64,000 nucleotides of DNA from Epiperipatus broadwayi (GCA_028023455.1 JAQFVV010000008.1:7378001-7442000); one strand, 5' to 3'; shown: positions 1 to 62,915, numbered from the stretch's first letter. The notes: generated by a model not told the origin, from the sequence alone. Made by a program: numbers and translations.

Positions 1-3000
1 CACACAAGCCCGGAGTTATATATCATTATTCAAGTTAGGTTAATGATTTAATTTGTAATTGTTTCTCCCTGATGATAGCGGAATGGGCATAAGAATGGAG
101 ATCTATGCGTGACTCGGATATGTTGTTGATTCGTTGTTAGATTCAAAAGATAGACAAATAGGGCAGAGTCCATAGTATTCTTGATTTTTATATTTCACGT
201 ATGATTGGTCTCGAGGTACTTTCATCTAGATTTCGAACCGGGTTAAACCACCATACACATTCAACTGGACAATATGAACCCTGGCAGCGTACTGCTCAAA
301 TCAGCCATTCAGAAAGGTCACTTCGGACAGATCTGGCTAGCTATCTTTCTAAACTTTGCCATTTGGTCTGTCAGATGAAAGGTTATATTTGAAAAAGGAA
401 ACAATTGTTCCATTAAAACCCTACCTAACATCAATGAAGATGAAAAGTGGACTCGTCAACCCTGGCTGGCTGATCAGACTTGGGGCCAGACCAGGTTTTA
501 GTTTGATTCACCTGCACCATGAAAGATCAAGCAATGCCATCTCAACATTCCTGCTGCTCCATCATCCAGTGCTGAATTATAACTCATATATAGTTATATA
601 TCTTTGTATTTATCTATTAATTTTTTCTTATTTGTAACCCTGACCGAACAGACTTGGAGCCAGACCTGATTTTAACTTGACCTTTCTGGGCCATACAAAT
701 ATAGTTACTCCCTCTTGTTGATCCTAATGCCTTGTCACCTGGCTTTAAAATGTAAAACTCTTATATATCTCAATTAATCATCATATTACTTATGTAATAC
801 ATTTAATCATTGTATATTCGTAATGTGAATAAATTTTGTTTTTGAAAGAAAGTAACAAATTACAATAATAAAATTCTACCAAATACAAAAATAAAAGGAA
901 TTAAAAGAAATAAAATAAATTAATCATAAAAACTAAAAATAAATCGGATATAATAAACTCACTAAATTAAAAGTGATTTAATTAAAAGACAATATTTATA
1001 TTTAATAAATTGTAAAGGATAAATTAACCATATAAAAAACCTAACCATTAAAAGTTCTAACATATGGAATCTTAAAAATTACAAAGACATTTAATTATGC
1101 AATAAATTATCATGACCAAATGTTAATACTTGATGCTAATAATGAATGTTCTTGCTTCTTACTTCTTAAAATATAACTTATTCTATCTTATACTTAAAAA
1201 TACATCTAAGAAAGATTCATTTAATTTCTGTTGAAATTATAAAATAATAAATATGATTGATATTCCAAATCCTTAAGATCTTTTTTCCCAATTTCTGAAG
1301 CTAGTTATTTTGAAGTAATTTCTAAATAAATGAAATTAGTCCATGTTTAATCTATTGTTTTAGATGATGCCATAAAATCACTCAAGACAAGATTCAGATG
1401 ATAATCTTATAGGCAATAAATTTGTATATTTCAAAATAATAGCTAGAATAACATACTTTCCTCATTTATTCCAAATAAACTTAAGTTAAAAATAGTTTCT
1501 CTTTTCCTAAAAAAAGTCAATATGCAGAAATGAATTTATATCATGTAAATCAAATAATGATTATTATTGTCAAATATTTTTGTTGAGTAAGCTAAGATAA
1601 AAGTATTCTATATTTTTATACTGCATTGCACAGATATTGTATAAATTGAGAAATTTTGCTAAGATTTATTAAAAAAAAACAACTAAATCAAATGGGTAAT
1701 ATTTCATAATAACCAGAAGTAAATGCCTAAATCTGAGCTAATTCAATAGGTGATTATCATATTTTCATAAACAAAATATGAATATTGTATTTAACTGATC
1801 TTTAATACCTAGAATAGTTTTAGGAAAACTAGAGATGATGCAAAATTTAATATAATATGCAGAGATTCCACAATATCGAATCTAATAAATGTTAGAAAAA
1901 ATGTGCATTAAATAAATATTATACTAAAATATTATTTCTAATCTTTAAAGTTTTTGTCATAATTAGTTTATAAGTAAGATGCTTGAATTTTTTTCATTAA
2001 AACTGAACATCATTTTTTGAAGATTTTAATAAAATTTATTTGAGGTAGTGCAGTTCTTTGTCATTATCTTCTTCTTCCATTTACATTAAGTTTCATGATA
2101 TTATACTATTTTAATTAATATGACAAAGCTTCATTTCTACTTGACGAAGACTGTAGACTCGAAATATGAGAAAAATATCAGCAAAAAATATTATTACAAA
2201 CAATAGTATAAATTTATCTTAAATTATATATTATTTCCTCTACTACAGGATTATCATAATTATTATCAGGAGAAACATATACTAATTTGGATGAGATTCA
2301 AGTTAAATTTCACATATTGTAGAATATAGTATAATAAAAATTTCCACGACATGAAATGCCCAAGAATATACATGTATATGACTACCAAGGGAGCAACTAT
2401 TAGTCCTATGACATTGATTTTGAATTAAATATATAATAGATTGATTAAAAAATGCTGCTAATGTTTGACAGTGTCCTTTCAAAAAAATATATTATAATGG
2501 TCGGAATGAGCTGAGAACAACAAAATCACCACTAGAGTAACAAACCACCACAATTCATTCCCACGCCATATAATACTTCATTTTGAGTTGGCGATCAGGG
2601 AGAAGGGGAAACTCTTGGAATTAGATTGTAACTATATTATTTCTCCGTGGAAAACAAGACACCCAATACAATGTATATATAAGATACAAACACTTTATTA
2701 GTGATACATTACAAACAAAAAATAAACAAAAGAAATGACTATCACTTAATTGGTTGCTAGACTCATTGGAGATAGTGGAAATCATATTAATTAGTGATTA
2801 TATATGTCAAAAGTTTCAATACACATATATATATAGAGAGATAAGGGATATTGGATATATCTATTTTCATCTTTGAGGCATATATCCCTCAAGCAGGTAC
2901 ATGATAATAAATGAAACAGGGCGAATTTAATTAACTCTAGAAAATATGGTTAAATAGATGACTGTGTAGCTCTCATGATCATGACCCATCAATGCTGAAA

Positions 3001-3329
3001 TATCAGGCTTCAATATAAATAAGGAAGAAAGACAGTATTGGGTTACTACAGTAATAAACAATCCAATAAAGGTAGACTGGAATATTCCCATCTGCGTGAG
3101 ACCATACCCAAGTCTCTATGAAATAAATGGATTATGGTAGAAAGGAATGAGAATCTTCCCCAAAAACAGAAATACATCTCACCAACAAGTCCTGAAAATC
3201 CAAATTAGCAATTTTAGTGTTTAACAGCTATTGAAATTTAGTACTTAGATTTTTCTAAAAAATGAATATCAATTTTCTTGTGAATATCATTGTAATAATA
3301 TTTATTTTTTAATATAACTACCATTTTAA

Positions 3330-4200
3330 TCTTAGAATATGTTGTCCAACAATCTAAACTTGTTGTAATGTGAACTTTTCTTGTATTTTGATTTCTAACT
3401 ATAATGTAATCTATTAATTGTCATTGTTTTGAACGCGAATGCATCCATGTTACTTTGTAACAATTTTTCTGTCTAAATAAAGGATTAGTGATAATAAATC
3501 CATGTGTTGTGCATAAATTCAATAATAGCAAACCATGTGAATTTACAATACCAATACTATTATTTCCAATAATGTTGTCCAAAGTCTAATTATTTGTGTC
3601 AAAACATACATTAAAGTTTTCAAGAGGAAAAAATTGTCTTTTAACAGTATTACTATCCAACAAGGAGTAAAAGCTTTCCTATTCTGAATTTTCTGAATCT
3701 AAGGTCAGAAAAGAGGTACTAATAAAATGAGCACTAATACCATTATGCAAGGTGAGTTTTAAAACCAATATCCTTTCATTGGCACAACTAAAAATATTAT
3801 AGAAGTTACTAAATTAAACTTTATAGCAAATCCAACAGCATGCATTCTACTTTTATTAACTGATCTGCCTATCCAAAAAACTTGTATCCATCCATTCTAT
3901 TCCTTCTTCTGGAAGACAAGTTTCATTAAGAGCAGCTATACTGATTTGAACTCTTGTAGTTCCTGAGCCTCAAGTGCAGTCTTGTATTGTGGTCTTGGAG
4001 TTTGTATCAAGTAAAGTCTGCACATTCCATGTATTTATATTTAAACAAAAAGATTTATAAGATTTACCCTTAGTACTACTATTATCTCTTGCTTTACCAT
4101 TACTTACTGATATTATTATTACTATTTTATTATTTACTGCAGAAATGAATAATCCACTAGGGATGACAACCTAGCCAGACTAGCCAGACTGGGCGAGCAG
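3330..4200 (-). mobile_element. Degenerate RTE-clade LINE, 5' part (APE endonuclease)
   Basis: Minus-strand translation with frameshifts: LNINTWNVQTLLD, AALNETCLPEEG, HAVGFAIK, NSHGLLLLNLC, KVTWMHSRSKQ*QLIDYIIVR. Confidence 0.85.
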
Positions 4201-8574: not shown

Positions 8575-9557
8575 GTAAGTTGGTCATCACATATTTATTA
8601 TTGTTGTGCAGTTTTTAATAATTGGCATATGTGATTTTTTTTTAAACGTGTATTTCTTTAATAGGTTGTACTATATTGAAATAGTAAGGCAACAGCTATT
8701 AGACACTTGTTTGTTTATTGCTATTATTACTAAATCTTAAAATAATTTTATCGCATTTATAGAAATATTTTATAGTTGGTATTTCGTAACGAATATCACA
8801 ATTAAACAAAGTTATGACTAATATATTTACATTAATATCTAATAATTAGAATTTGTTTATCTAATTAATGTATACAATATTTGTACAATAAATATCAAGA
8901 AAGCAATATGTATGTATCTAATTTAGGCACACGATATTTATAAATTGATCTCTTTTTTTCGTAAATGTTATTACCATCAACAATTTTTGTACAATTGAAA
9001 AATTTTATAAAATAATTCTGGATCGTAGTTGATTTTTATATAGTTTTAATTATTATTTTTTTAATATAATACCTAACTTTCAGTTATACTAGAAAGTGAT
9101 ATAATTGTATTAGTATGAAGCATAGAATCCTGAAGGATAGAATAGGATGGGATAGGTAGCAAACAAATATTTATGTCTTGGTAGATTTTAAATATCAGGA
9201 AATAAATGTTCGGATAGTGTAAATTAAATGATAATGGAAATTATTCAGGGTTTATGTTATTGGTTTTTTTTTTTAAGTATTCAACGAAAGAAATATGAAT
9301 AACAGTAATATTATTGATTATATAGTTGTAAGTATATATGTTCTCTCCCAAATTTCAAGTAGGATAATTAGGCAGAAGTGTAGTATGCTGATCAAACAGT
9401 TTTCAGAAACTGCAGTGCATCTAATATTCTCTGCATTTTTAATAAACAAGGCAAAACTCTCTCCATACAGTAGTGCCACCTTGTGCCAATCAGAGTAATC
9501 AATGGATGCCAGAAGGCTTGTGCATAAAATCCCTATCTAATGCCTACTCATCCAATA

Positions 9558-9600
9558 TCCCCAGACTAGTTTCTGACTTGTGGCCATCATCACTGAGGAG
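9558..9600 (-). ncRNA. Type I hammerhead motif, family 1, left arm (C3>G in core)
   Basis: Minus strand reads CTCCTCA-GTGATGA-TGGC CACAA GTCA-GAAAC-TA-GTC-TGGGG. Confidence 0.65.
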
Positions 9601-10292
9601 CCTTGGATCTGAGAGCACTGCACCTAGATCTTAGGATCTAATGCAACCCTCCAGCAACCACCACTTAGATCTTAGGATCTAATACAACCCTCCAGCAACC
9701 ACCATTTATCTCCACTTAACTACAAAACTATGAGAATGAAATTGAAAACACAATAATATTTTCAATCTAAGCTCAATAGCTTATATAGTCATATGGGTCT
9801 GAACTCAATTCAGTACCTATACATTTTGGTGGCCTTGGCTCTTTAACAACCATAGCCACCACTATCCTATTAGGCAGGATTGGTGTTAAACCACCAAACA
9901 TCATATGATCACTATCTCATACTAGCACATAACTGTTATTAAACAAGGCAAAACTCTCTCCATACAGTAGTGTCACCCTGTGCCAATCAGAGTAATCAAT
10001 GGATGCCAGAAGGATGAGATAGTGATCATGTAATGTTTGGTGGTTTAACACCAATTCTGCCTAATATGATAATGGTGGCTATGGTTGTTAAAGAGCCAAG
10101 GCCACCAAAATGTATGAGTACTGAATTGAGTTCAGACCCATATGACTATATAAGCTGTTGAGCTTAGATTGAAAATATTATTGTGTTTTCAATTTCATTC
10201 TCATAGTTTTGTAGTTAAATGGAGATAAAAGGTGGTTGCTGAAGGGTTGCATTAGATCCTAAGATCTAGGTGCAGTGCTCTCAGATCCAAGG

Positions 10293-10324
10293 CTCCTCAC
10301 TGATGACCAGAAACTAGTCTGGGA
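10293..10324 (+). ncRNA. Type I hammerhead motif, family 1, right arm (stem II mostly deleted)
   Basis: CTCCTCA-CTGATGA-CCA-GAAAC-TA-GTC-TGGGA. Confidence 0.6.
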
Positions 10325-11999
10325 ATTTTGGATGAGTAGGCATTAGATAGGGATTTTATGCACAAGCCTTCTGGCATCCATTGATTATCTGATTGGCACA
10401 GGGTGACACTACTGTATGGAAAGAGTTTTGCCTTGTTTAATAATAATTATGTGCTAGTATGAGATAGTAATCATGTGATATTTGGTGCATTTTTAATACT
10501 ATTATACACGTGACTATCTTGAATTTTGCAATCTAGATAGCTTCATTATGTTATTATTTGTTGACATTCATTAAATATAAAACTGTTATCTTTAAATTAT
10601 TATATTCAATAACAATTTTTTACTACAAATATTTTCTAAATATATTTGATAAGAAAAGATCTGTAACCTTTATTATAATTTAATATTTTATTGGCTTGTC
10701 TTTAATTGACCTGGCTTTTAATGGTTATAGTATTGATTAGACTTTTGGATTTGGTATATATTATTGTCAAATGGCTTCAGAATAAAGCATGTGCAAGTAA
10801 GTTGGTTTTCATAATGTTGATAAAAGTTTCAATCTTGAGAAGAATTAAAGGAATTCAAATTCTACCAGCAAATATAGATTATTCCAAAGTGACATACTAG
10901 TGGTTTATTGAAACCTATAAACTTTGAAGTTCCAGAAGTCTCTGATATCTGTATTTATTATTACTAGAACTAATTTTTGTCAAAAGTGAAATCATTATTG
11001 AGCATGGAGAGTTCTGATAATCTTTGTTTAAGAACAATTTTTTTTTTTTATAATGTTTTACAATGCTATACAACTTTTCTCTCTGAATAAAGTTAATATG
11101 CCTGTTGAGAAATTATTTTAGTGACTCCTTTTGAGCAATCAGTTGCCCATTAATCAGCTGGTTTTGAGATTATTTATGGAAATAGTCTTTCTTTTAACCA
11201 GAATTTTTGAAAGTGCTGAAATGATTGTCAGTAATTTTTTTTTGTAACTACTCTCTCCTGATAGGGAATAGATGATTGTTTATGTCACAGAACTTAACAA
11301 TCAAAGTTATGTTAAGATGGCTAATTAGTAAAAGGATTAACTGGCTAAGCAAAAAAGATCAATGTTTTATTTATGGCTAGCTGTTTTTATTGTTTAAAAT
11401 ATTTTGGATTTTGTCTTTTATGAAAATGGGGGGAGGGGGGAATTGGTGGCATTGTAAATATTTTTTCTAATTAATACTTTAAAGAGTTTAACATATACTA
11501 TTTTTTAAAAAGGAGAAGTACTTTTCCAATAAATCTTAATTTTTATTTTAAGCTGATTATTCTGCTTTTGCAAACATACTATAATCATTGTATTTTTGTC
11601 AGTGAATAAGGATAATATTTGATTAACTGTGTGAAAAGGGTAGAGATTTTTAAAAATGTAATTGGCATGTTTGTATTAAATATTTGGTGTGCTAAGAAAA
11701 TATTATTGTTAATTATGATTTGATTGAAAAACTTGTAAAACTTATAAATTTAAAACTATTTTTACATATAAAAAACTGTAGTTAAGATTCAGTTAGAAAT
11801 CAGAAAGGATGTTTGGGGGTTGATGGGGTGGTGGTGGTGTATTATAGTGAAAGATTGTAAAAATAACTCAACAGTGAAGGTGATGACATCTGGAGTAGAA
11901 GTAATATCACCATGATTAGCAGCTATTCATAAATGAATGTGATTAATATAAATCTAAAAGAAATATAAACACAGAATAAAAAAAGTTAAAAGTTTGCTT

Positions 12000-18149: not shown

Positions 18150-19560
18150 ATAGAATGTGAATAAATGGGCACTTTAGTGGTAATCCTTATGGATTTGAGT
18201 TAAATGGAATAAATGAAGGAAAATATTTTCCATTGTTATTTGAATTTTTGGCTTAGAAGAAGATTCATAATCAAATATTTGAATGACCTAAGTATTGATA
18301 AATCTGCTAATTTATTGATTAAAATATCAATTGGTATTACACCAAATGCTGATTTAATGTCCAGATGAACTACAACTGGACCATATTTTTTCTTATTTCT
18401 GACTGTGTCGATTACTGTTTTAAACAAAAAAGCAGCCTGTCCAGTTGATGAACCTTTCTTTACAAACTGAATTTTTGATAGCAATGTCAAAAGATAAGGT
18501 TCAATTCTATTTTAATCATTGATTCTAGAACTTTAATCTCAAGTAGACTCATTGATATGGCTTTGAGGTTTTTAAATGTGGATATATTTTCTTTAGTCTT
18601 AGCAAATGGGACCAAAGAGATGGTATAAAGTTCATGTATGTGATATATTTTTATTTTCTTTAGTCTTAGCAAATGGGACCAAAGAGATGGTATAAAGTTC
18701 ATGTATGTGATATATTTTCTTTTGTTAGGAAGTTAGCTAAATTTGTCAGACATTTCTGAAGTTAGCAAATGGAACCAAAGAGATAGAATAAAGTTCATAT
18801 ATGTGATATATTTTTATTTGTTAGGAAGTTAGCTAAATTTGTCAGACATTTTGCTGTCAATTGATCTAAATGTCTATATACAAAGCAAGATATTCTATAT
18901 ATTCCTGAATGACATGAATTTGGCATTGAAGCAAGTTCTTTCACAAACTCTCTAGGTACTTAAGTTATATTATCTTCTGATTTCCCCTTCTTTTCTGATT
19001 GCTATTGGAACATAGTTTAATGGAGCTTGACCCAGTGCCCTCTGAATGTATTGCCTAGATCACATGCGAGTTTGACAGATATATTTTCCTTTTTTTTTTT
19101 TTCACTAAGTATTCTCTGACTGAGTCACAAGCTAACCAATACGCTTTCCTCAGAACTTTTACATTTGTATAGCCCTCTGTTGAGGTAATATTAAGCATAA
19201 TTCTCTTGGGCAAATCATCTGAATGTGCTAAAATTTTTGAGGTGGATGGTTGGTTACTTGTTATTATATCTATTGTATATGATATTACGCTTACAAATGC
19301 AATCTATGTTTGTACAGGGTCCATTTCCAAGTCACGAATTTTGAATAATATGTATATGTCTGAGAAGATATACTGTAGTCTGCCCTGGGAGCAGTATCTG
19401 AATGATTTTAACTGTTATGATCATAGATCTATATGTGATATCATTTTTAAGAGAAACTATCAGTACAAAATTATCTGAAAAAGAAGAGTTTATAAGTGAA
19501 AAGTTGATCATTTGATGCAATACTAGTGAATAGAAAGCAAGGGCAATTATTGATGAATAT
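18150..19560 (-). mobile_element. Degenerate non-LTR retrotransposon (endonuclease end to RT) with internal tandem duplications
   Basis: ORF fragments LVPFAK...NLKAISMSLLEIKVLESMI and QFVKKGSSTGQA...VVVHLDIKSAFG...LINKL match LINE RT motifs; duplicated blocks at about 18590-18850. Confidence 0.8.
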
Positions 19561-19669
19561 CTGAGCCATTATTGAAAGAGATATAGTTCTGTGGAAAAAA
19601 CTCTTTACCAGACAGTATGACGTATTAAAATTATAGGATGTGATGAGGATGTATATTTAGAGTTTAATG

Positions 19670-19750
19670 TAGGGAGTGTGAAAGTCTTGAGTTCAAATCC
19701 CTTCTAATTACATTTAAATTCAGTATAGACAATATATTTGTATTTAAGTA
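19670..19750 (+). repeat. Short fragment of retrozyme-like family 2
   Basis: GAGTGTGAAAGTCTTGAGTTCAAATCC...AATTACATT...TATAGACAATATAT matches 34490-34560 and the reverse complement of 33420-33460. Confidence 0.65.
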
Positions 19751-22700
19751 ATCTATTAATTATTATTTTTCCTGGAAGAATGTACGCATAGTGCAACAAT
19801 TAACATGCATGCTCCAATATATATTTTGAATGAGCTAAATGGATAGGTTTTGTTTATCACAATTCCTGTCACAATTGAAAGTAAGAATACTGTTCTGGAG
19901 AATAATGAATATTCTTATTTATCAAAAAAATTGGATGGATTTCTTTGTGATTTGTTATGCATCTTAGTTTTCAGAAATCCAATTATGGGTTGTTGAATAA
20001 TATAAAGTATTTTTAAAGTTAATGATTGTTTTCTACAGAATTTAATCCTCTGACTTTAATTAACTCTATTTTTATTAACATAATTATATCTAATTAAGTG
20101 TATGAATATTAATAATACAAAAAATATATAAATGATATTTGTATTAAAGTTAATAGTCCAATTTATGGATATTAAACCCTCATTTGATAACTCTTGAAAT
20201 TTATCATTAGGAATTATTTTTGAACATGGAGTTTTATTATGATGACAGGCTCCTCATTTGAAGTATCTCTTGCATCATTATCTGGTTAACAATATTTAAA
20301 TTTATACTAGGTAGCTTTAAAATATATGTTTCATTTATATATATATATATATGCCAAATCATTCAATAAGTAAGTTTTTTAAGTCTGGCAAAATAAAACA
20401 ACAATTATAGCCGTGAAGAATTTTATAAGAAATGTATGCCATCTTTCTATAGTTGACAATATTTCAACAATTTTCTTTTATTGCTTGATAGTAAAATCAT
20501 TGATTTGCCTCATATCTTAGAAGTTTTATTTTTTAATTGTTTATTGTATTTCTTTCTTCCAACTCAGATATTACACAACTGATAATAATATTAGTTGAAA
20601 CACATACAACTACATGAGTAGCCTCCACAACTTTTTTTTGTGTGAAGTAGATAAAAAAAAAATTCTTCACTACAGTTTTGAAATCTTTTTTCCTATATTT
20701 TTTTCTTACTCTGACTTTTTATTTTTATTCATCCTAGCACTTAGAATTGGATAATCATTCTTATCTAGCATTATTATTATTATATTTGGCAAAGTGTAGA
20801 TGTGTCAAATCAGATAATAAAGGAGTTATTGAATATTTTTAAAAAAGATATTAATTAAAAAATGAAATAATTTGTTTATTAAATTAGTTAATATACTTTA
20901 TTCTTGAAAATGAAGCTCTTAATGCAACTTCATCATCAGAATCAAATGATTATTTACAATTGGATAATTATTAAATGAGCAGTGAAAGTAAAAATGAATT
21001 ATCTGTTCCAGCTATTTTTTTAAATCAATTCCAATGTGAAGTGGAGACTCAGCATTAAGATCAGTATATGATCATTAATAATATTTGCAAAATTGGCTAT
21101 GTTTTTTTTAATATGATCTAAGCATAATTACACTATAATTTTTGAAAACGCTAATAATAAATGACATAATTAGTTCAAACTTGATTTAAAAAAAAAAACT
21201 TTTTGAAAACAATTTTGTAAAAATAAATGCAAAAATTTTTTTATAGTAAATCTACAGTAACAATATGAAGCAAAGTTTAAATGCACTATCGACTGGGATA
21301 AACTAAAACTAGTTATGAGAATAGAAGAAAGAAAACATTTTGATTATTGATTATAATTATGCAGATTAAGTCGAAGGGTCTATAAAGATATTTGGAACAT
21401 TTTATTGAATTTTAGAGTAGGTTTTTTTACAGCAGCTTGCAAAAATTTATATATATATGATTTTTTTTACAGTTGACTGTCAAAAATCTGAAAAGGAAAG
21501 TGATAGTGAAGTTTTTGATTTTAATTATTTTCAGTTTTCAGAAATAATAGTTTATCAGATATAGTTCATAAGAAATATTGGTCAAATGATAAATGTTTTT
21601 GAAACTTATATAAGATTTTAATTTTGTAAAAAGTTGTATTTCCTACTCTGCTTTATTATAGTCACCAAAATTCAGCATGCACTAATTTATTTATTTGTAG
21701 AAAAAATTCTGAGATATATGTCAATAATTTAAAGAGAAGTAAAACTAAAACTAAAAATATATTCTAAGGATTTGCTGAATTATAATATATGAATTCTTAG
21801 TTCCATATTTCTTAGAGGAAGATCCATGAAATATTGAGTTGTATTGTTTTAAACATCATTTACTTAGCCTTAATATTATTATTTATCTTGGATTGTAAGA
21901 GAAGCATGGGATCAAGATCCAGAAATACTGAAGATTTTTTTTTTCAATATTTAAATCCAATCAAAACAATTTTGATAATTGATATAATGATAGAATCCAA
22001 GTCATGAAAGATTTGTATGAATAAAGTGTAAAATTAATGTGCATTCAGAATATTGCTTAATAAATTTAGTTGATTTATAAAAGAGCAAACTATTAATGTT
22101 ATGCCATAAAATTATAAGTTTCATGGAGAATCTTCTCAGCTTTGAGAAAGAGAGTAATAATTTTTTTTAATACTGATAAAGTAATGGTAATTTATTTGGT
22201 GTTGATTAATACATAATAAAAATATTCTGTACTATTTGATATTGAACTATGTGTAGAATTAATTCAATAGGTTTTAAAACAATCCATTCTATTCCATATT
22301 TCAAATAAGCAAAGACTTGATTTTTTAAAAAATTATAAACATATATAAATGCAAATCTATATAAATTTTGTTATTAAAATTTAAATTATTAAATTATCCT
22401 TTTTTATTGTTGTGTGAAATAAAAAAAAACCTTACTTTTACCTTTTTTCTTCAGAAGAAATTTTATAAAACTAAAAATTGTCATTTCTTCATAATTATTT
22501 ATTATATAATCTGGGTTTGAATCCAGACTAGATAAATTTGAAAATTTTTGGGGGATTTTAACCTGGTTTAGAATTTTTCTTTTACATAGCTGGCGTATAG
22601 CCAAACTAGCTAATCATTAGTAATGGTCATTAAATGGGAATGTAATTATTCTTAGCTAGAGGATGAAATGATGGAAAACCTAATAATTGGCAAATTTGAT

Positions 22701-32164: not shown

Positions 32165-33513
32165 TATATATATTTAATGAATAGCAATAGGTGAGAGGTA
32201 CAAATAATTTAAGCTACAGTGGTGACTTTTCATCTTGACTGCTGATGAGAACAAACTAACAAATATCTTGGAGAAGCTATCAAAGGAAAGTCAAATGTAT
32301 GCTTTTGAAATAATTACCTTAAAAACTAAAGCTATGATTATAAATTATGTCAATAACATTTATTAAATATGATCTGCTTTCATATGGGATCATACATGCT
32401 TGCCAATTAATTATATTTGGAATTTTTTGTATCCCATTCCATTTTAGTGACTTTGACTAAGATTATTTCTGCTAAAATTATATCTATAAGACTTATTTGA
32501 ATCTTGATATCCCTTTGAGAACCTTTTTACATACAATCATGGCATCTTCAACATTTATTTTTAGGTTATAGCTATTTGCTTCCTCTGACTTGCCTCCTGA
32601 ATGTATTTATAATGTGATATTTATGAATAATACTGTTCTTCATTTTTAATAATTGCCTTTTTGTTATAAAAATTATTATCACATTCTCCATACCTTTGTT
32701 TCATATTAATATTTGTAATTCTAAATTTTTTGTTGTATATTAAGCTTTTTGCCTAAAAACAAGTTGAGTAACTCAGCCAAGTGATAACACTTAATCATTA
32801 TTGGTTGTAGTTTGCTATTGCTCGAAACATTCTACACATAATATATTCACTTCACATATAAACAAATTGTTCTTAACATAAAATTATTATATATATTTTA
32901 ATAAAAAAGTCATTCAATACGCAAAAGAAATATTGGTATAAAACTTATTTTATCTGGTTTATCAAAATTGATTGTGGTAGCAAAAATTAATGTTATTTTT
33001 TTTTTATCAGACTATCTTATGTTTTTCAGTGCAATTTTTTTTTCAAAATACTGATAATTATGTTTCATATTCTCTTAATTCTTGTACTTATTTTCATTCT
33101 AACAAAATTTTTATCTTGCGAACAAACTTTTTCATTCTCATTATCACTTTTTTTTTTATATATATATATTAATGTTAAAATTTGTGAGTAAATAAATAAT
33201 CTTTTGTTATTATTAATCAGTACTCTGTTGACGTAAGAAGCTTGTCATCATACTTCCATTAATTTAATTATTTATAAAATAGATTTTTAAATTACATTTA
33301 ATTTTTATATGCTACATGTTATCCAATACACTATTTACTTTTTTTAATGTTACCTTTTTTTAAAACTTAATATTAAATTATTGTTACAGATTTGTGATTT
33401 GTTTCTTAATATATATTTAAAAGGATTTGAACTCAGTCTTTCACACTCTCCACAACTATCCAGTCCATCTTATAAAACTGATACACATGACCACATACTT
33501 GTGAAAAAGATCA

Positions 33514-33572
33514 ATGATCTTCAATATACGTATTTTATGCTGAACCAACACTCATCATTTGTTCCAGATCAC
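33514..33572 (-). ncRNA. Decayed type I hammerhead motif, family 2, left arm
   Basis: Minus strand reads GATCTGGAACAA-ATGATGA-GTGTTG GTT CAGCAT-AAAAT-ACGT-ATA-TTGAAGATC. Confidence 0.55.
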
Positions 33573-34367
33573 TATCTCCCACACATATATACAATCACTG
33601 CTCAGATTAGACTATATTAAGATAGAAAATCTTCAAACTTTAATAGACAAGCTTTAATCTTTCTCCACTCTCCAACTTTTCATCTATTCATATCATTGAA
33701 AATCTGAGGATGAAATGCTCAGAGCCTTTGTTAATGCCAATATTATTATCATACCCATGTTAATGCTAAGTCAGTCTGACCCCTCATACCCAGGATTTTA
33801 ATATGTCCATATGATTATACAGAAGAGGGATGGGCAGAATACAGTTTGAATATGTAATATTTAAGTACATGTATATTGTATACTTAAATACATGTATATT
33901 GTATATACTAAATTTAATGTAATTAGTGCTAGTTCAGCATGAAACATATATCGGAGATCATTGTTTTCACATGTATGTGGTCATGGGTATCAGTTGTATA
34001 AAGTGGATTGGATATTTCGAGGAGTTTGGTCTGAGTTCAAGTCCTTATAATTACATTAGGTTTAGTATAGGCAATATACATGTATTTAAATATTACATAT
34101 TCAGCCTGTATTCTGCCCATCCCTCTTCTGTATAATTAAATGGACATATTAAGGTCCTATGTGTGAGGGGATTAGATTAACTTAAGGTCAACATGGATAT
34201 ATTAGCATCAACAAGGGCTCTGAACCTTTCATTTTCGGATTTTCAAAGATATGGATGGTTGAAAAGTTGGAAAGTGGAGAAGATTGAAGCTTGTCCATTA
34301 AAGTTTGAAGATTTGCTATGTTAATATAAACTGAGCAGTGATTGTATATATATATGTGGGAGATGGT

Positions 34368-34421
34368 GATCTGGACCAACAGATGAGTGCTGATTCAGCA
34401 CAAAATCATATACTGGAGATC
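34368..34421 (+). ncRNA. Decayed type I hammerhead motif, family 2, right arm
   Basis: GATCTGGACCAA-CAGATGA-GTGCTG ATT CAGCAC-AAAAT-CAT-ATA-CTGGAGATC; perfect 6-bp stem II. Confidence 0.58.
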
Positions 34422-34581
34422 ATTGATCTTTTTCACATATATGTGTGGTCATATGTATCAGTTGTATAAGATGGATTGGATAGCTATGGTGAGTTTGAAG
34501 GTCTGAGTTCAAGTTCTTATAATTACATTGTTTAATATAGACAATATATATATGTATTTAAATATTATATATATATTATAG

Positions 34582-34657
34582 ATTTATGTAAGAAAACTTT
34601 TGAAGATGCAGATGATATGACAGAAGAAGATATTGAATCTGAATTAGCTATTATCAG
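34582..34657 (+). CDS. SRP72: SRP72 exon 7 (DLCKKTFEDADDMTEEDIESELAIIR)
   Basis: ttatag acceptor, gttatg donor; phase 1 in, phase 2 out; EEDxxxELAII motif. Confidence 0.93.
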
Positions 34658-34760
34658 GTTATGTATATAAATATACATTTTGTACTTGTATATATGTATA
34701 TTTGATTGTTTATTTAATTATTTATTTGCTAGCATAGAGATAGTATGTAATTTTGACAGC

Positions 34761-34847
34761 AAGGATTTTTCATCCTAACCAAGAAGACATCATTGAGATA
34801 TTGTTAAAACAATATATATAACCAATGTGTTAGGATGAAAAATCTTT
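34761..34847. repeat. Small inverted repeat / MITE-like relic
   Basis: AAGGATTTTTCATCCTAAC pairs with GTTAGGATGAAAAATCTTT (18/19). Confidence 0.65.
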
Positions 34848-37396
34848 ACTGCTTAAATTACATTTAATTTTTGTAAATATTAGCATTTTACTGAGATTTC
34901 GACTGGAACCACAAGTCATCTGCCAGGTTATAGAAATTATTCAGGGATGTTGTAAAGAGGCCGGAAATCAAGAAACGTTTCTTTTACTATTCAGAAGATG
35001 CCTGATGAGATACAGTTGAAATGTCGATTTAGTGTAATATTAAAAATGAACAAATTTATACACAGTTGAAGCCAAAATATTTATTCACATTACTTTAATA
35101 TATATATTGTAGTGGAAATATGTGTGAATTGCTGGCTAATTATTGTCTCAAGTTGAGTTTCAGTTTATATAAGGAAGATAATGTACTGTACTCTTACCTA
35201 TGCATTGGAAATCCAATTTATATGACAAATGTAATCAATAAAGCCATATGGTGTTATGATGATGCTTCAAATTGGGAATCAATATGTAATGAAAATATAT
35301 GTCATGTATCCAACAGTGATTAAATTAAATAATTATCACCACCAAGCTTCATTTTGATTTGCCAAATTTATGTAATATGAAACAGATAATTTATTTTTCC
35401 AATCTTGGTAGAGATAATGTCTGTTTCTGTTTTAGAACTATGATGATGAATTACAGTTTTATTTATTTAGGGACACCAATAAAATAATGCTACTGATGAA
35501 TTTAGTAAGCAATCACCCAAGCAAACACATATATACTCCAAATCATCATTGCTAAGTACAGCATAAAAACATGAAATTGTCATTATCATTGATATAATAA
35601 AAATTTTGGATTGTAGATAACAAAGAAGTATGTCAAAGAATAAAATTATTTAATAAATAATAACAAATGATATTGTTGCATAAATTAAATTAATATTTAT
35701 ACAATTATTTTATGATAGAAAATAATATTATATCAACAATAAATTAAAGATGGTATTGTTATTAGAATTTCTTTGCAAAAACAGATTTTTATTTATTAAT
35801 TGACTGCTATAAGAATTAGCCAAACTTTTTATATTAATCTAGATATTTAAACTTAGAAATATTAAATAAAACTTCTTTGGGAATAATAATCTGGTACAAA
35901 TATGTTTTATCAAAGTACAAAATAATTTTGATAAATATTATTTCAGAAAATAATAATCAAAGGATAAAACAAAATTAATATTGTAATTGATATAAGAAAT
36001 CTTTAAGACAGAATATAAAATAAATAGTTTGTATCGTATTCAGAATTTAAATAAAATAATTTTGTACATACTTTTGCTCAGTAATGAAATTTTCATGAAT
36101 GAATATGTATTTATAAAAATTCTCCTTCCTTGTTTGTTTTTTTGTTTTAGTGATAAGTTCATATTATTCAGAAGTCTTAACAGAAGTAGTGAACAAGAAT
36201 TCTTTCTATTAATTAAGTGTCCAAGAAAGTTTTGTGAGACTTTTAGTTTAAAATGGAGATGATAACTTTTGTTGAATTCTGTGCAGCTTTTAATTTAAAA
36301 TTAGTTGATAACTTTTGAAGAAGTTAAATGCAACTTTCTGTTTCACTATCAAGATGAAAATTTTGATGGATCAATCATCAAAGAGAAAGAATAATGAATC
36401 AATCCAAAGTGAGTTCTAATGAGACAAATGTCATATCAATATTTATATAACAGGTAGTGATAATAACTGTGAGGTTTTCAGCATAAACTTATGGTTTGGT
36501 GATTTTTATGATGTGCTGAAATTCTGAATATTTAATTTAAAAATTGACTGAAGAACTATTTATATAATTAGACTTGTTTATGAAAAAGCAGCAAGATTTT
36601 GATATCTGTTCATCTATTTGTTATAACATATTAGAGTGTATTTCATAAACAATTAATTTAGGAATTTTATAAACATCTAAATTAATTAAAGATAATCTTG
36701 ATAATTATGTCTAAAGTTTAACAGATCCTGTTTATAAATGGGTGTCCTGTTTACAAAACAAATTTACAAGAATAAACAAGAATCTTAATCTTATTATAAG
36801 TTCTACAATAATTAGTATATTTGTTTTAAAGTAAATATAAAACTGCATAAATTTTTAAGTTAAAAAAAAAGTAATATAGTTCAGCTTCATGTGTATATTA
36901 TTGTTACTATTTATCTATATATCATTCCATTATTATATGTAATCAAGTTATTTAATTTAAATATCATTACATGAGACCAAATCATCTCAGTACGTACATA
37001 CATATATATATATTAACAAAATTGATTCTTTGAAATACAAATGTTAAATGAAAGTTAAAGTCAAATATATAATTTTCCCTCCCCATTGGAATTTATTATA
37101 GTAATTTTTACTATATTTTTTTTTATATAAAATTTTAAAATAATATCTTATATATTATTGTTCTAATAATATTTAATATTAAATAGTAATAGATCTAAAT
37201 AGATATGTGTATTTGTTTTATAATTCTTAATAATGGATGAATATTAAATAGGTAATAAGTGTCATATTGTTTTTTTATTAAATTTCATTTTTTTTTTTTT
37301 TTAAATATAATTTTTGTTTAAAATGAAATATAAAAACATTTTGAACTAAGCAAACAAATCTTTATAAAAATGGCTTTTTAATTTTGTCTTTTGTAG

Positions 37397-39599: not shown

Positions 39600-40585
39600 A
39601 AGGAATTAACTATGAAAAATATAATATTGTAACAAATTAAAGTCAGTAAACATGAATGTGCGTATATACATGCCCACACATATATGTAAAATTTTAATCA
39701 TTTATTGTATTTTATATAATAATTCAAATATGTCTAAGAATTATATTGCACATGTCTGCATATAAAAATAAGTGTCAAATAGACACATAAAATTTAATCA
39801 TTTTTTGTTTTTGTCATTATTGAATGTTAATTGAAATATATATAAATATGTCTAGGAATTATATTGCACATGTCTGCATATAAAAATAAGTGTCAAATAG
39901 ACACATATAAAATTTAATCATTTTTTGTTTTTGTCATTATTGAATGTCAATTGAAATATATATTCATATAATAATAAAATGTGCAGCTCTGTGCATATAT
40001 ATGTGTGTTACATGTAAACCTCTATATAGTAACTTGAATTTTGTATATTAATCATGTAAACCACAATGTAATAATTTTTTTGTAGTATGTTAATCAAAAT
40101 TAGAAGGCATATGTGTATGCCATATTCTAGAGACCTTAACTTCATTTTTTTAATTGTAAACATGTATTTAATTATTAAAATTATTCCAGTGACTTAATTC
40201 TAAAGAGTTTAGAATATTGTTTGTTTGCATCATCTCTTGATCATTGTAACTGTTATAAATCTCATATTTATTGAGCTAGATTCGTGCATAATGGTCTGAT
40301 ATATAAATGTGGATATATTTAGTGCTTAAGGGGCATCCAATATGATTGATATACCCTGGGATGGAGCTAAGATTATATTCTTTAAGGCCTGTGCACTACA
40401 TTTTATTTAGTTTAGTCTATTAGAAATTAAGTTTATAGTCTGCCAGTACACTAATGTACTAAATGGCTAGAGCATTGATGATGATCAGTATGTTTAATAT
40501 CCCAGTATTATTGTTTCTGATTATTATGTTTTCTGATGGATTAGCACTTAGTTTGTGCATCCAAATTATGTTTAAATAATTGCTT
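39600..40585 (-). repeat. Second, inverted copy of repeat family 3, with a 118-bp tandem duplication at 39726-39963
   Basis: Reverse-complement homology to 28040-29050; AAATATGTCTA.GAATTATATTGCACATGTCTGC starts at 39726 and 39844. Confidence 0.75.
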
Positions 40586-40865
40586 AGATTGAAAATATTA
40601 TTATGTTTTCAATTTCATTCTCATAGTTCTGTAGTTAAGTAGAGATAAAAGGAGGCTGCTGGAGGCTTGTATTAGATCCTAAGATTTACATGCAGTGCTC
40701 TCAGATCCAACGCTCCTCACTGATGAAGGTCACAAGCCAGAAACTAGTCTGGAGATATTGGATGAGTATCACTAGATGGGGATTTTATGCACAAGCCTTC
40801 TGGGATCCATTGATTACTCTGGTTGATGGCACTACTATATAAGGGTTTTGCCTGTTTTATATTGT
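40583..40865 (+). mobile_element. Partial copy of retrozyme-like family 1
   Basis: Collinear with 10160-10440 (GCTTAGATTGAAAATATTATT...GTGCTCTCAGATCCAA...GATTTTATGCACAAGCCTTCTGG). Confidence 0.85.
40713..40754 (+). ncRNA. Type I hammerhead motif with intact catalytic core
   Basis: CTCCTCA-CTGATGA-AGGT CACAA GCCA-GAAAC-TA-GTC-TGGAG: CUGAUGA, GAAA and GUC triplet all present. Confidence 0.7.
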
Positions 40866-51816: not shown

Positions 51817-54800
51817 TGTTTTATGTCTTAGCTCACTAAACCCCAGAGTAAGAATAACATATTTAGTACGGAATATTATTTTTTTGAGGACACAAAGAAC
51901 ACAGCGACTCAGACTTCAATTTGTATAATTTAATATACAAGTCTATATATATATACACATATATATATATATTCAATTTATATAATTTAATATACAAGTC
52001 TATATATATAGTCTAGATACATGAACCAAAATGCCATACTAATTTATATAATTCGATCCACAGTTAATTAGGAATATAAGTCCTTTCACTTATTAAGTCT
52101 ATTCACTAATATTAATACTAAAAGCAGTATATTTACCTTTCCCATCTTTTAAGCCGTGTGGCCCTTACAGTGTTTAAAATAATAATAAGATCAGGATGAT
52201 CTGTTTTGACCCTAATCAGCTTATTGACCTTCAGAAGCTGAGATCCTGGAAATAAGATCGTTCCCCACTGCTTCACTCTGGTGACACAGTTGCTTTGAAG
52301 ACAATGAAAAGCAAGCATGTGTTGCTTTTCTCCACAGTTTATATTCTTTCAGTCCTTTTGTTTTCTGGAGTAATTAAGCTCATTGGGGAAAATCTGGGTG
52401 GTGAATGTCTTATCAGTTTAATCTTCCTCTGTAAATTTAATTAGTATTTTGATTCATAGTAATTAAATTTTCTCCATTATCTGATTATTTATTTTTTCCT
52501 TCTGATAATAATTACTGCATGCAATACATTTTAATTAAATATTTTATATTATAGCAGTTCGATTAATCTTGTTCTGGCTATTTATTATTTATTTATTTAA
52601 TTATTTTCTCTCTAAATTATTTTCATAACTTATTAAAATACATAATTTATTAATATTTCAATAATTATTAATTATTTCAATGCTTTACACATAATCTCAT
52701 AATTTTTTAGATCTTTGTCTTTTATGTTGGAGCCTGGGTAATTTATGTTCTTTTGTTGGTTCCATGAGTACCTCGTTTTGGATTTCGGTTACTATTTCAG
52801 CTTCACTACATTCTAGCTCAGTCTGTTGCTTCCCTTGAATTTTGTTATCAGGTGTTGCATCAAATATTTTTTGTTTTCCGCAAGTTTTAGTCATTTCTTC
52901 TTTTATCAGTTAGTAGTGCTGCTGAAAACTGGATGTTTTCTATGACTCGTTGGCAGATGTAGTTTGTATGTCTCCGATAATCTGTTCCATTATTTATTTG
53001 AATGTTTAACTATTTGTTTGGCTAATTTGCCAGTGATTATATCTTCAATCCATTTTTTTTGATCAGATCACATACCCAAACTCTATCACCTGTTTTATGT
53101 ATGTTATTTTTACTATCGTATTGAAAATGTTCATCCATTTTTGGGAGTAACATTGCTAGTTTTATATGCAATTTCATGCCCATTAGCAACTCAGCCGAAA
53201 TTTACCCATAACTGTCGACAGCATGGAATGTTGATGTAGCATAGCATCATATACAGCTTCTTGCATGTTATTATTATTAGTCTTTTTCAGAGCTTTTTTA
53301 ATGTTAAACGGCTTTCTCAGTCAGGCAGTTCAATGTAGGATCGTATGGGGGTGCAAAGTATGTTTGATTCTTTTATTTTTGAAGAAATCTTCCATTTCTT
53401 GAGCAGTGAATCCAATGCCATTATCAGAAACAATTATTTCTGGTAATCCATGGCATGAAAAAACTGCATTTAGACTTTATATGGTTTCACTAGCACTTTT
53501 TCACAATGCAATACTCCACCTATTTAGAGTATGCATCATACAAGTGTAAAAAGTATTTTCTCATTGATTGGATTTGCAAGGTCCATGTGAAGTCTCTGCG
53601 ATGATTTAGTTGCTTTAGGCCACTGTGTATACTCTTTAGGTTATAATAGTCATTTCCGACCAACAAACTGTGCATTTCTTAATGTGATTCTCAATGTCTA
53701 AAGTTATCTTTGGCCACCAGACATAACTACATGTTAAAGCTTTTGCGTGCACAACTGGATGACTTTCGTGCAATAGTCTAAACTTTTTCTCTACCCTCTG
53801 TTGGTATTAGAACTATATCATCAATTAGCACACAAGCCATTCTGAATGATAACTTGTCACAATTTGTCCAAAAAAGCAGGCAAAAAGCATTGTGGTGTCT
53901 TGGGTGGCCAGCCATTTCCAATCCAGTCTATCAGCAGTTTGTACCCTTTATTGGCCTTTGTCCATTTTGCTACTATGTTTCTGTTTAAAATATCTGACTG
54001 TAGGACATCTTTGTCTGGATTTCTGGACAAAACATCAATATGTGGAATCTCCTTTCCTTTTTTATATGACAACTGATAATCATATGATAACATATTCCTC
54101 CACCATAACATACACAGACTCAAATGGTCACGCACAAGCTTATTGTTCGCTAATATTTCCAATATTGGCTTGTGATCAGTTACTATATGAAAAGATCTGG
54201 ATATATGTGGGTGAAATTTTTTTAAGCCGAACATAATAGCCAAGATCTCTTTATCAATCTGGCTACAGTTTCTCTCAGCTTTAGAAAGGGTCTTTGATAC
54301 ATTGGCTATAGGTCGTTCACCATTGTAACATGGATGATATAAAACTGTCCTCACAACCTATTTTGAAGCACCTGTTGTTAAGCGCATGTTGAGATATAAT
54401 TTATCAAAATGAACCAATAATTTGTCTGAGACAGCAGAGCTTTAGTTCATATAAAAGCTTTCTCATGTATTTTTAACCACTACCACTTTTGATTCTTCTT
54501 TAATAAATAAATTCATATGGAGTATTTTTTACTTTAGCCTTATTTGGTAGAAAACGTTCAGAATAGTTTCTCATACCCAGCAATGTCTGGAGTTCTTTAA
54601 CGTTTCTTGGTTTAGTTGCACTTTCCATGGCTTTTACTTTCTCATGCAATGGTTGCTTACCGTTATCTGAGATTATATGCCCCAGGAATATTAATTCCTT
54701 TGTATTCCACATCCTTTTTTGAGTATTTAATTTGACTTTGAATCTTTGTAATTTTTTTGCATAACTTAAACAGTCTTTGATGAAGCATCTCTTCTCAGCA

Positions 54801-61704: not shown

Positions 61705-62915
61705 CATCATCATCATCATCATCAACAACCATTATCAATCCACTGCAGGATGAAGGTCTCTCCAAGTTCAATCCATCTTTTCCTATCTTTAGCTTCTCTT
61801 CTCCACATCACCCCTGCACACTTTTTTATTTCATCCATCCATCTCACATGTGGTCTCTTTCTGGGTCTTTTACAATCTCTTGGAATCCAGTTCAAAATTT
61901 CAATTGTCCATCTATTATCATCTCTTCTAGCAATATCCAGCCCAACTCCACTTCAGTCTTTTAATTTTTTCAATGAGGTCAGTAACACCTGTTTGTTCTC
62001 TTACCCATACTTTGCATTTTCGATCTCTTCTTGTTATTCCCAACATGCATTTCTCCATACTTCTTTGAGTGGTCTGAAGTCTCTATATTGCTCTTATATT
62101 AAGTGTCCAAGTCTCAGATCCATAAGTAAGAACTGGCAAAACACATTTATTAAAAACCTTCCTTTTCAAACACATAGGCATATTTCCTTTTAGTATCAAG
62201 TTTTCTACCAAAAGCACTCCAACCAAGTTTAATTCTATGGTTAATTTCATCCATTATGTTTCCATCTGTATTAATAATCTGACCAAGATATATGTAACTG
62301 TTAACTTCTTCTAACTCATAATAATCAATCTTCATTTTCATATTTTGAGAAAATCTATTAAACATTACTTTAGTCTTTTTAACATTTATCTTTAGTCCTA
62401 CTTTCATCTGATAACTCCTGCTACATTTCCTGTAGCTCTAAAGCATTATTTGCAAAAACAACTACATCATCTGCAAAATCTAAATGACTTAAATAATCTC
62501 CATTTACTTTCACTCTTTTAGCTTCCCATTTTAATTCATAAAATACTTCTTGCAGCACTGCTGTAAAAAGTTTTGGAGATATGGAGTCTCCTTGTCTTAC
62601 ACCCTTTTCAATGTTGATTTTCCTACTACCATTATGTAATCTAATTGTTGCTGTTGCATGTTTATAAATATCCTTTAAAATATGACAATATCCTGGATTT
62701 ACACCTTGATGATCCAATGCTTTAATCACTGAAGAAATGTTTATAGAATCAAATGCCTTTTCATAATTACAAATCCTAAGCATAATGGCAACTCATATTT
62801 ATTTGTCCTTTCTATAACTTCTCTCAATACCTGGATATGATCTACTGTACTAAAACCACTTTTAAATCCAACTTGTTCTCTTGGTTGGTGGAAACCCAGT
62901 GTTTTCTGTAGACAT
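61705..62915 (-). mobile_element. 5'-truncated RTE-clade LINE with (ATG)n tail
   Basis: ORFs YEKAFDS...IEKGVRQGDSISPKLF...YLSHLDFADDVV and KVGLKINVKKTKVM...YIYLGQ; 3' end CTGCAGTGGATTGATAATGG then (ATG)n; frameshifted. Confidence 0.92.

Follow-up and report, generated by a model that had tools for sequence, protein, structure and literature searches.

Positions 33397-34575 of a 64,000-nucleotide (nt) stretch of Epiperipatus broadwayi DNA (GCA_028023455.1, JAQFVV010000008.1:7378001-7442000), a 26% G+C eukaryotic sequence that we call the window throughout, hold a fold-back repeat with remnants of a hammerhead ribozyme. The question raised by this locus is what kind of element was inserted here and by which machinery. 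A preliminary description of the window had assigned the repeat to a retrozyme-like family (here family 2), the second one in the window besides another family of nearly the same unit size (family 1). Our analysis indicates that the repeat very probably represents one old insertion of a high-copy, non-coding, non-autonomous element of the animal non-long terminal repeat (non-LTR) retrozyme type, carrying a minimal type-I hammerhead and mobilised by Penelope-like elements (PLEs). The anatomy of the insertion, the size of the family and its family-level hammerhead motif were observed directly. The element class is known and its understanding is unchanged by the locus, which links an animal hammerhead repeat family to Penelope-style integration, with arms of complementary DNA (cDNA) from both strands, a 13-bp target duplication and a one-sided tail.

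Anatomy of the insertion

We have analysed the repeat by direct reading, repeat finding and MAFFT alignment of its three pieces. The architecture that had been proposed was borne out, with a minus-sense and a plus-sense copy that meet 5'-to-5' at 33925/33926, the latter comprising about 1.4 monomers and thus running beyond a single unit. The proposed period of 462 nt was also recovered, the direct repeats being spaced by 462 nt at the ribozyme and by 468-472 nt further on. The cleavage-to-cleavage monomer of the plus arm corresponds to 33951-34412 (462 nt). This head-to-tail period, running through the 1.4 units of the plus arm with one hammerhead per unit, matches the organization of a retrozyme unit. 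No open reading frame (ORF) longer than 79 aa was found in the repeat, and none was common to both arms.

The 3' ends of both arms point outward and their 5'-truncated ends meet at the central junction. From there, the minus arm (reverse complement of 33411-33925) starts with TAATTACATT, and the start of the plus arm at 33926 falls inside the helix II hairpin (GTGCTAGTTCAGCATGAAAC). Arm against arm, BLAST gave 82% identity across 484 columns; without gaps the identity is 84-88%, with transitions and transversions in a 44:21 ratio. The plus arm terminates with ...GTATTTAAATATTATATATATA, ~160 nt past its predicted cleavage site, and the homology of the minus arm stops near ...CAAATCCTTTTAA, ~110 nt past its own, the plus arm being ~45 nt longer than the minus arm at the 3' end.

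Insertions of PLEs are described as a partial tandem with an adjacent inverted 5'-truncated copy and a 30-40-bp tail that often occurs at one end only (PMC8557442). The partial tandem and the inverted 5'-truncated copy that meet at 33925/33926 match this signature. The tail feature was matched as well, by the extension at one end; a solo family 2 fragment (19660-19752) ends at the same long site and family 1 behaves alike.

The hammerhead motif at this locus and at family level

The three lesioned ribozyme motifs were found by direct reading as they had been listed: ATGATGA...CATAAAA on the minus strand (33558-33533, copy A), ...CATGAAAC (33935-33945, copy B) and CAGATGA...CACAAAA (34380-34405, copy C). 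Copy A comprises AUGAUGA (33558-33552), helix II with its loop (33551-33537), AAAA (33536-33533) and the palindromic helix III UACGUAUA (33532-33525), with a long helix I and a predicted cleavage between 33525 and 33524; its lesions are the loss of C3 and G12. In copy C, which has lost U4 and G12, CAGAUGA (34380-34386) is followed by helix II (GUGCUG-AUU-CAGCAC, 34387-34401), AAAA (34402-34405) and a helix III remnant (34406-34412), and cleavage is predicted after 34412. Copy B retains helix II (GUGCUA/CAGCAU) and an intact GAAA (33941-33944), with a predicted cleavage after 33950, and is devoid of CUGAUGA and of the 5' helix I strand because the plus arm is truncated there. With these lesions, none of the three copies can be active.

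Fold prediction gave a long helix I and a 6-bp helix II for copies A and C and for the family composite described below (z-scores of -2.3, -2.9 and -1.4, respectively). In the thermodynamic folds of A and C, helix I is made up of three stretches (4, 7 and 5 bp, ~16 bp in total) and carries a GGA bulge in its 5' strand. A strict type-I descriptor, which asks for CUGANGA, GAAA, U-H, a perfectly paired helix II of 4 bp or more and a helix I of 4 bp, had no match in the window itself, copies A and C each failing by two core lesions and one helix I mismatch. When up to two core mismatches were allowed, the sole match was an unrelated AT-rich site (1228-1275), which was rejected, shuffles yielding 0.9 such matches. 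No compensatory changes were found among copies A, B and C, whose paired positions differ solely by G-C to G-U changes and, in one case, by a double change that leaves an A-A mismatch.

The family was examined by aligning contigs of four public runs to 33300-34700 at a likeness of at least 80%. All four consist of assembler contigs; X1 is a DNA run and three are RNA-labelled, X14 being from the same organism as X1 and the other two, X5 and X12, from other organisms. A total of 93,902 X1 contigs were placed, with a summed word depth of ~10^6 on the repeat vs. ~8-400 in the flanks. Based on this contig count and depth, family 2 has on the order of 10^4-10^5 copies. No further copies came from scans with ribozyme patterns, two of metagenomes and one of viral contigs.

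At position 34381, where the local letter is A, T accounts for 87% (X1), 94% (X14), 97% (X5) and 96% (X12) of the depth, and CUGAUGA is thereby restored at family level. The letter that gives GUGCUG in helix II at position 33548 accounts for 42% of the depth in X1 and for 65-96% in the three RNA-labelled runs. The loose ends of the contigs provided upstream consensus strings (GGGAGATGATGATCTGGACCAACTGA, including ...CCAACTGA...) and a downstream consensus that reads CAGCA/TGAAATGTGTATATTGGAGATCATTTATCT in X5 (CAGCA/TGAAAT...) or ...AAAAT/ATGTATATTGGAGATCATTTAT in X1. The CUGANGA core is therefore present at family level and absent from the local copies A (AUGAUGA) and C (CAGAUGA). GAAA is found in copy B and in the X5 loose-end consensus, the corresponding letters being AAAA in copies A and C and in the X1 consensus. 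Thus, the core that had been reconstructed from the local copies, CUGAUGA-GUGCUG NUU CAGCAC-GAAA, held for CUGAUGA by the T at 34381 and for GUGCUG by position 33548, and the support for GAAA was mixed between the X5 and X1 consensus.

An 83-nt composite motif made of family-majority strings passed the strict type-I descriptor; none of 100 dinucleotide-shuffled versions of the whole window, searched on both strands, contained a match. In the motif, the 6-bp helix II (GUGCUG/CAGCAC) is closed by G10.1-C11.1, the U16.1-H17 site is formed by AUACGUAU followed by A, and the motif flanks provide a helix I of 4 + 7 + 5 bp. The proposal that the lesions reflect CpG decay of CAC-GAAA agreed with the CpG observed/expected ratio of the window (0.29) and its TG/CA excess, and the same reading fits both the step from C11.1 to G12 and the ACGU in the middle of helix III. 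The sites at which CpG decay would kill such ribozymes are predictable, one being the junction of helix II with G12 and the other the palindrome of helix III.

Helix III and hammerhead type

Helix III, whose loops had earlier been described as short and palindrome-like, is the 8-nt palindrome AUACGUAU, within which copy A keeps a perfect UACGUA. At family level, GAA is followed by A-UAYGUA-U, then by A and then by UUGGAG. As a monomer, AUACGUAU would form at most 2 bp with a tetraloop, and between two ribozymes it would form an 8-bp helix III. The family 2 hammerhead is accordingly predicted to be of the dimer-type minimal type-I kind, as in PLEs and animal non-LTR retrozymes. Hammerheads of this kind occur in the pseudo-LTRs of PLEs and in most hammerhead repeats of animals (PMC4209133), and the dimer-type minimal form is also known from amphibian retrozymes (PMC7229834). 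The family 2 motif shares with the minimal hammerheads of PLEs (Cervera & de la Pena 2014, PMC4209133) the type-I topology, a long helix II (6 bp) and a palindromic helix III so short that it is stable only between two ribozymes. It differs from them in the length of the palindrome (8 nt, AUACGUAU, vs. a 1-2-bp stem with a 2-4-nt loop in PLEs) and in having an unusually long helix I (~16 bp with a 3-nt bulge).

Target duplication in an SRP72 splice site

The repeat is bordered by a 13-bp target duplication, whose copies are identical at 11 of 13 positions and sit exactly at both outer borders. Because this identity matches the level observed between the arms, the repeat was taken as the product of a single insertion event. 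Of the 13 duplicated bases, 6 belong to the end of an intron and 7 to the start of the adjoining exon (34582-34658), the insertion having therefore struck the splice site itself. The only PDB matches to the exon translation were four SRP72 sequences, aligned end to end with the mammalian protein, at residues 205-228 in three chains and at 208-231 in the fourth; the E-values were weak (3.9-8) because of the short query. From the arrangement of the bases, the right copy of the duplication would have rebuilt a working acceptor, whose upstream polypyrimidine/branch region would now be element-derived. The left copy, whose acceptor lies at 33389/33390, is presumably a spare, unused SRP72 acceptor with the first 7 exon bases. 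An insertion on the acceptor of an essential gene's exon would thus owe its survival to the restoration of this site by the duplication.

An AT-rich filler that is part of neither separates the left duplication from the minus arm. Its reverse complement starts with TAAGAAAC, resembling the exon bases TAAGAAAAC to the right of the other duplication. The filler could be a small inverted target copy or could result from chance in AT-rich DNA.

Family 2 in RNA-labelled contigs

The RNA-labelled runs contained 1,700-4,000 family contigs, with summed depths of 10^3-10^4 on the repeat, 34-78 on the SRP72 exon and 0 on the intron flanks. The variant shares of DNA (X1) and RNA (X14) from the same organism differed at positions 33548 (42% vs. 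96%), 33645 (39% vs. 99%) and 33678 (22% vs. 81%). Such differences indicate that the RNA comes from a subset of copies, unlike what DNA carry-over or uniform read-through would give. This suggests that transcription of a family 2 subfamily is real, the depth-weighted contig data being coarse. The contig joints of the "opposite strands" and "goes back 443" types were not used, as they are explicable by ordinary-copy contigs split between arms or tandem units.

Proposed insertion by PLE machinery and alternative explanations

A purified PLE protein was able to nick both strands of AT-rich DNA and to extend them, and it began reverse transcription at two internal sites downstream of the hammerhead, the tail being the sequence between them (PMC11167929). 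For family 2, two ribozymes on a multimeric RNA would pair via the 8-nt palindromic helix III to give the active form, and the multimeric (or circular) element RNA would serve as template for a Penelope-like reverse transcriptase/GIY-YIG endonuclease. The enzyme would nick both DNA strands 13 bp apart in AT-rich DNA, and cDNA would be primed on both strands from internal start sites located ~110 and ~160 nt downstream of the ribozyme cleavage site. Joining of the two 5'-truncated cDNAs head-to-head would then yield an insertion in which one arm is inverted, the tandem is partial, 13 bp of target are duplicated and one side extends ~45 nt further. Since the insertion, each arm would have drifted by ~7%, largely through transitions that include CpG decay, all three local ribozymes being now dead. 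In this scheme we infer the enzyme, the form of the template, self-cleavage and the circular RNA.

Besides the partial tandem, the inverted 5'-truncated copy and the one-end extension, family 2 has in common with PLE insertions (Craig et al. 2021, PMC8557442; Frangieh et al. 2024, PMC11167929) the AT-rich target and the location of its 3' ends, which are downstream of the hammerhead and not at it. It differs from PLEs in lacking a reverse transcriptase/endonuclease ORF, so that it must borrow the enzyme. Its extension is ~45 nt long, vs. 30-40 in PLEs (PMC8557442), and its 3' ends lie ~110 and ~160 nt past the cleavage site, vs. ~85-92 nt in the anole PLE (PMC11167929). With animal non-LTR retrozymes (Cervera & de la Pena 2020, PMC7229834; Li et al. 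2026, 10.64898/2026.07.22.740005) it shares a short, non-coding and AT-rich unit with one type-I hammerhead each, head-to-tail multimers, high copy number, target duplications longer than 4 bp, the coexistence of several unrelated families per genome and the presence of RNA in transcriptome libraries. The 462-nt unit exceeds the 170-400 nt first reported for these retrozymes and falls within the 51-972 bp of the 2026 survey. Unlike in those retrozymes, the insertion is here a short inverted-plus-tandem structure and not a long array.

Several of our observations weigh against this interpretation. The duplication alone is modest evidence, its local score having been reached by 40 of 1000 shuffles; its weight comes from the placement at both borders and not from the score. 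In the loose-end consensus of the DNA run X1 (CAAAAT...), G12 is A; it follows that many genomic copies, if not most of them, are dead at this CpG, and the fully intact share may be small. The composite that passed the descriptor joins strings from two organisms. The fold of the whole monomer was no better than that of shuffles (z of -0.66 for sense and +0.56 for antisense), the rod-like structure typical of retrozyme circles being unsupported in this decayed copy. Molecule ends and circular junctions are not readable in assembler contigs, where circularity and unit length are not visible, and the 64-kb window contains no autonomous PLE ORF. Rfam hammerhead models gave no match at gathering score in the whole window, or at E up to 10 in 33000-35000. 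However, the intact family-1 motif at 40713-40754, taken as control, was likewise missed at E up to 10. Hence, the Rfam blank reflects a limit of the models for the minimal variant and is not evidence against the motif.

Schistosome Sm-alpha repeats, reportedly described by Ferbeyre et al. in 1998 and also mentioned in PMC4209133, are a few hundred nt long and combine a hammerhead with Pol III-box-like sequence (Pol III, RNA polymerase III). By analogy, family 2 could be a tRNA-derived, Pol III-dependent element resembling short interspersed nuclear elements (SINEs), with an incidental hammerhead and copied by the machinery of long interspersed nuclear elements (LINEs), not of PLEs. The B-box-like motif GTTCAAATCC/GTTCAAGTCC found 85-95 nt downstream of the cleavage site is compatible with such an origin, and so is the D-arm-like hairpin AGCU-GUAGGG-AGCU that precedes it in the family-majority string. 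Yet no tRNA was detected by ARAGORN or by Rfam, the latter at gathering score in the whole window and at E up to 10 in 33000-35000, and the T-stem cannot be drawn. The A-box match is poor and, at ~14 nt from the B box, too close, and several sense-strand T4-T5 runs inside the monomer would stop Pol III. An A-rich or simple-repeat 3' tail is absent, and an inverted arm with a one-sided tail is a trait of PLEs and not of LINEs or SINEs (PMC8557442). Compared with Sm-alpha, the tRNA likeness of family 2 comes down to a B-box-like 10-13-mer and a small hairpin, and the insertion anatomy is PLE-like. We therefore consider a SINE-like origin quite improbable.

It is improbable too that the repeat is a shortened piece of the pseudo-LTR or tail of an autonomous PLE, and not a member of a separate non-autonomous family. 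PLE insertions do show heavy 5' truncation, and their hammerhead resides in the pseudo-LTR (PMC4209133, PMC8557442), and frog retrozyme families are sister to PLE pseudo-LTRs (bioRxiv 10.64898/2026.07.22.740005). However, the plus arm passes from unit to unit head-to-tail at the 462-nt period, with no ORF remnant between, which argues for a template that was a multimer of short units and not pseudo-LTR-ORF-pseudo-LTR; moreover, the depth corresponding to 10^4-10^5 copies is spread over the whole unit. That an ordinary dispersed repeat or foldback acquired hammerhead-like letters by chance is scarcely credible, even if the core is broken in every local copy, Rfam is blank and the fold of the monomer is unremarkable. 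The core is restored in the family majority, the expectation for the full descriptor is below 0.01 per 128 kb, and the conserved features (G10.1-C11.1, A15.1-U16.1, H17 and the palindromic helix III) occur in the right order and register; several other hammerhead families are also present in the same genome. The reading that we favour thus continues to be a PLE-mediated retrozyme insertion.

Comparison with family 1

In family 1 (9432-10498) the arms are likewise inverted, the 13-bp duplication (TGCATTTTTAATA) is perfect, and the right arm exceeds the left one by ~45 nt at the 3' end. The common mobilisation pathway suggested in the preliminary description is supported by the features that both families share, namely the 13-bp target duplication and the ~45-nt longer 3' arm, which are a published PLE signature. 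The presence of the same signature in an unrelated family 24 kb away is consistent with the recently proposed use of PLE enzymes by animal retrozymes. The nearly equal unit length was also verified (462 nt in family 2 vs. ~455 nt in family 1). Two similar unit sizes do not demonstrate the size constraint that had been proposed. Published retrozyme families range from 51 to 972 bp, and a single genome can harbour many of them, as illustrated by the 57 families of Xenopus (bioRxiv 10.64898/2026.07.22.740005).

The two families had been described as dissimilar in sequence. This stood in that neither BLAST nor local alignment against shuffles gave significant similarity, but both carry the B-box-like TGAGTTCARNYCC, noticed post hoc. 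In the window, TGAGTTCARNYCC is matched at 9795-9807, 10127-10139, 19688-19700, 33423-33435 and 34032-34044, all five sites lying in copies of family 1 or 2, with 0.04 matches expected. As the pattern was picked after seeing both families, a fair estimate of chance is a few percent, which makes the finding marginally significant. It is conceivable, though doubtful, that unrelated hammerhead families here converge on a unit of ~400-470 nt, a 13-bp duplication and TGAGTTCARNYCC, with the PLE enzyme or a prior circular-RNA step selecting templates by size and by this block. If true, selection by size and TGAGTTCARNYCC would be a template-recognition rule not yet described for PLEs.

Coordinates and other features of the window

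Table 1. Coordinates of the family 2 insertion, its ribozyme remnants and associated features in the window
Feature	Position	Strand	Remarks
Left copy of target-site duplication	33384..33396	+	TTACAGATTTGTG; matches 34576-34588 at 11/13 positions, at the outer border of the repeat
AT-rich filler, ~20 nt	33397..33416	.	ATTTGTTTCTTAATATATAT; between left duplication and end of minus arm
Minus-sense arm, ~one monomer	33417..33925	-	Truncated 5' end at 33925, 3' end toward outer flank; repeat finding, MAFFT, BLAST
Copy A, lesioned hammerhead of minus arm	33506..33580	-	Core 33558-33525, AUGAUGA-GUGUUG-GUU-CAGCAU-AAAA-UACGUAUA
Plus-sense arm, ~1.4 monomers (partial tandem)	33926..34575	+	Repeat finding, MAFFT, BLAST
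Copy B, 3' half hammerhead at truncated 5' end of plus arm	33926..33950	+	GUGCUA-GUU-CAGCAU-GAAA-CAUAUA
B-box-like motif	34032..34044	+	TGAGTTCAAGTCC; other copies at 33423-33435 (minus) and, degraded, at 34504-34516
Copy C, lesioned full hammerhead of plus arm	34357..34432	+	Core 34380-34412, CAGAUGA-GUGCUG-AUU-CAGCAC-AAAA-UCAUAUA
Right copy of target-site duplication	34576..34588	+	TTATAGATTTATG; contains predicted working acceptor AG (34580-34581) and first 7 exon bases
Host exon (SRP72), directly abutting the insertion	34582..34658	+	24-aa translation LCKKTFEDADDMTEEDIESELAII; PDB matches
Solo 5'-truncated fragment of family 2	19660..19752	+	Ends near the 3' position of the plus arm (long site), GTATTTAA...

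Downstream of the SRP72 exon, a 124-nt hairpin at 34743-34866 has 35-nt arms that are 86% complementary. It gave weak Rfam matches to plant microRNA precursors (best E of 0.0024), far below gathering, and looks like a small foldback in the next intron, similar to miniature inverted-repeat transposable elements. A 23-nt direct repeat, TTAAATTACATTTAATTTTT.TA, occurs at 33287-33309 and 34853-34875.

Two ORF fragments were observed on the minus strand, one at 53857-54354 that corresponds to an RNase H-like piece of an LTR element, and the other at 62421-62783 that corresponds to a LINE-type reverse-transcriptase piece, with Atlas neighbours carrying PF00078. The window also contains a two-copy tandem duplication of 118 nt at 39726-39963 (96% matches) and two-copy tandem duplications of 67/96 nt at 18585-18851 (93-100% matches).

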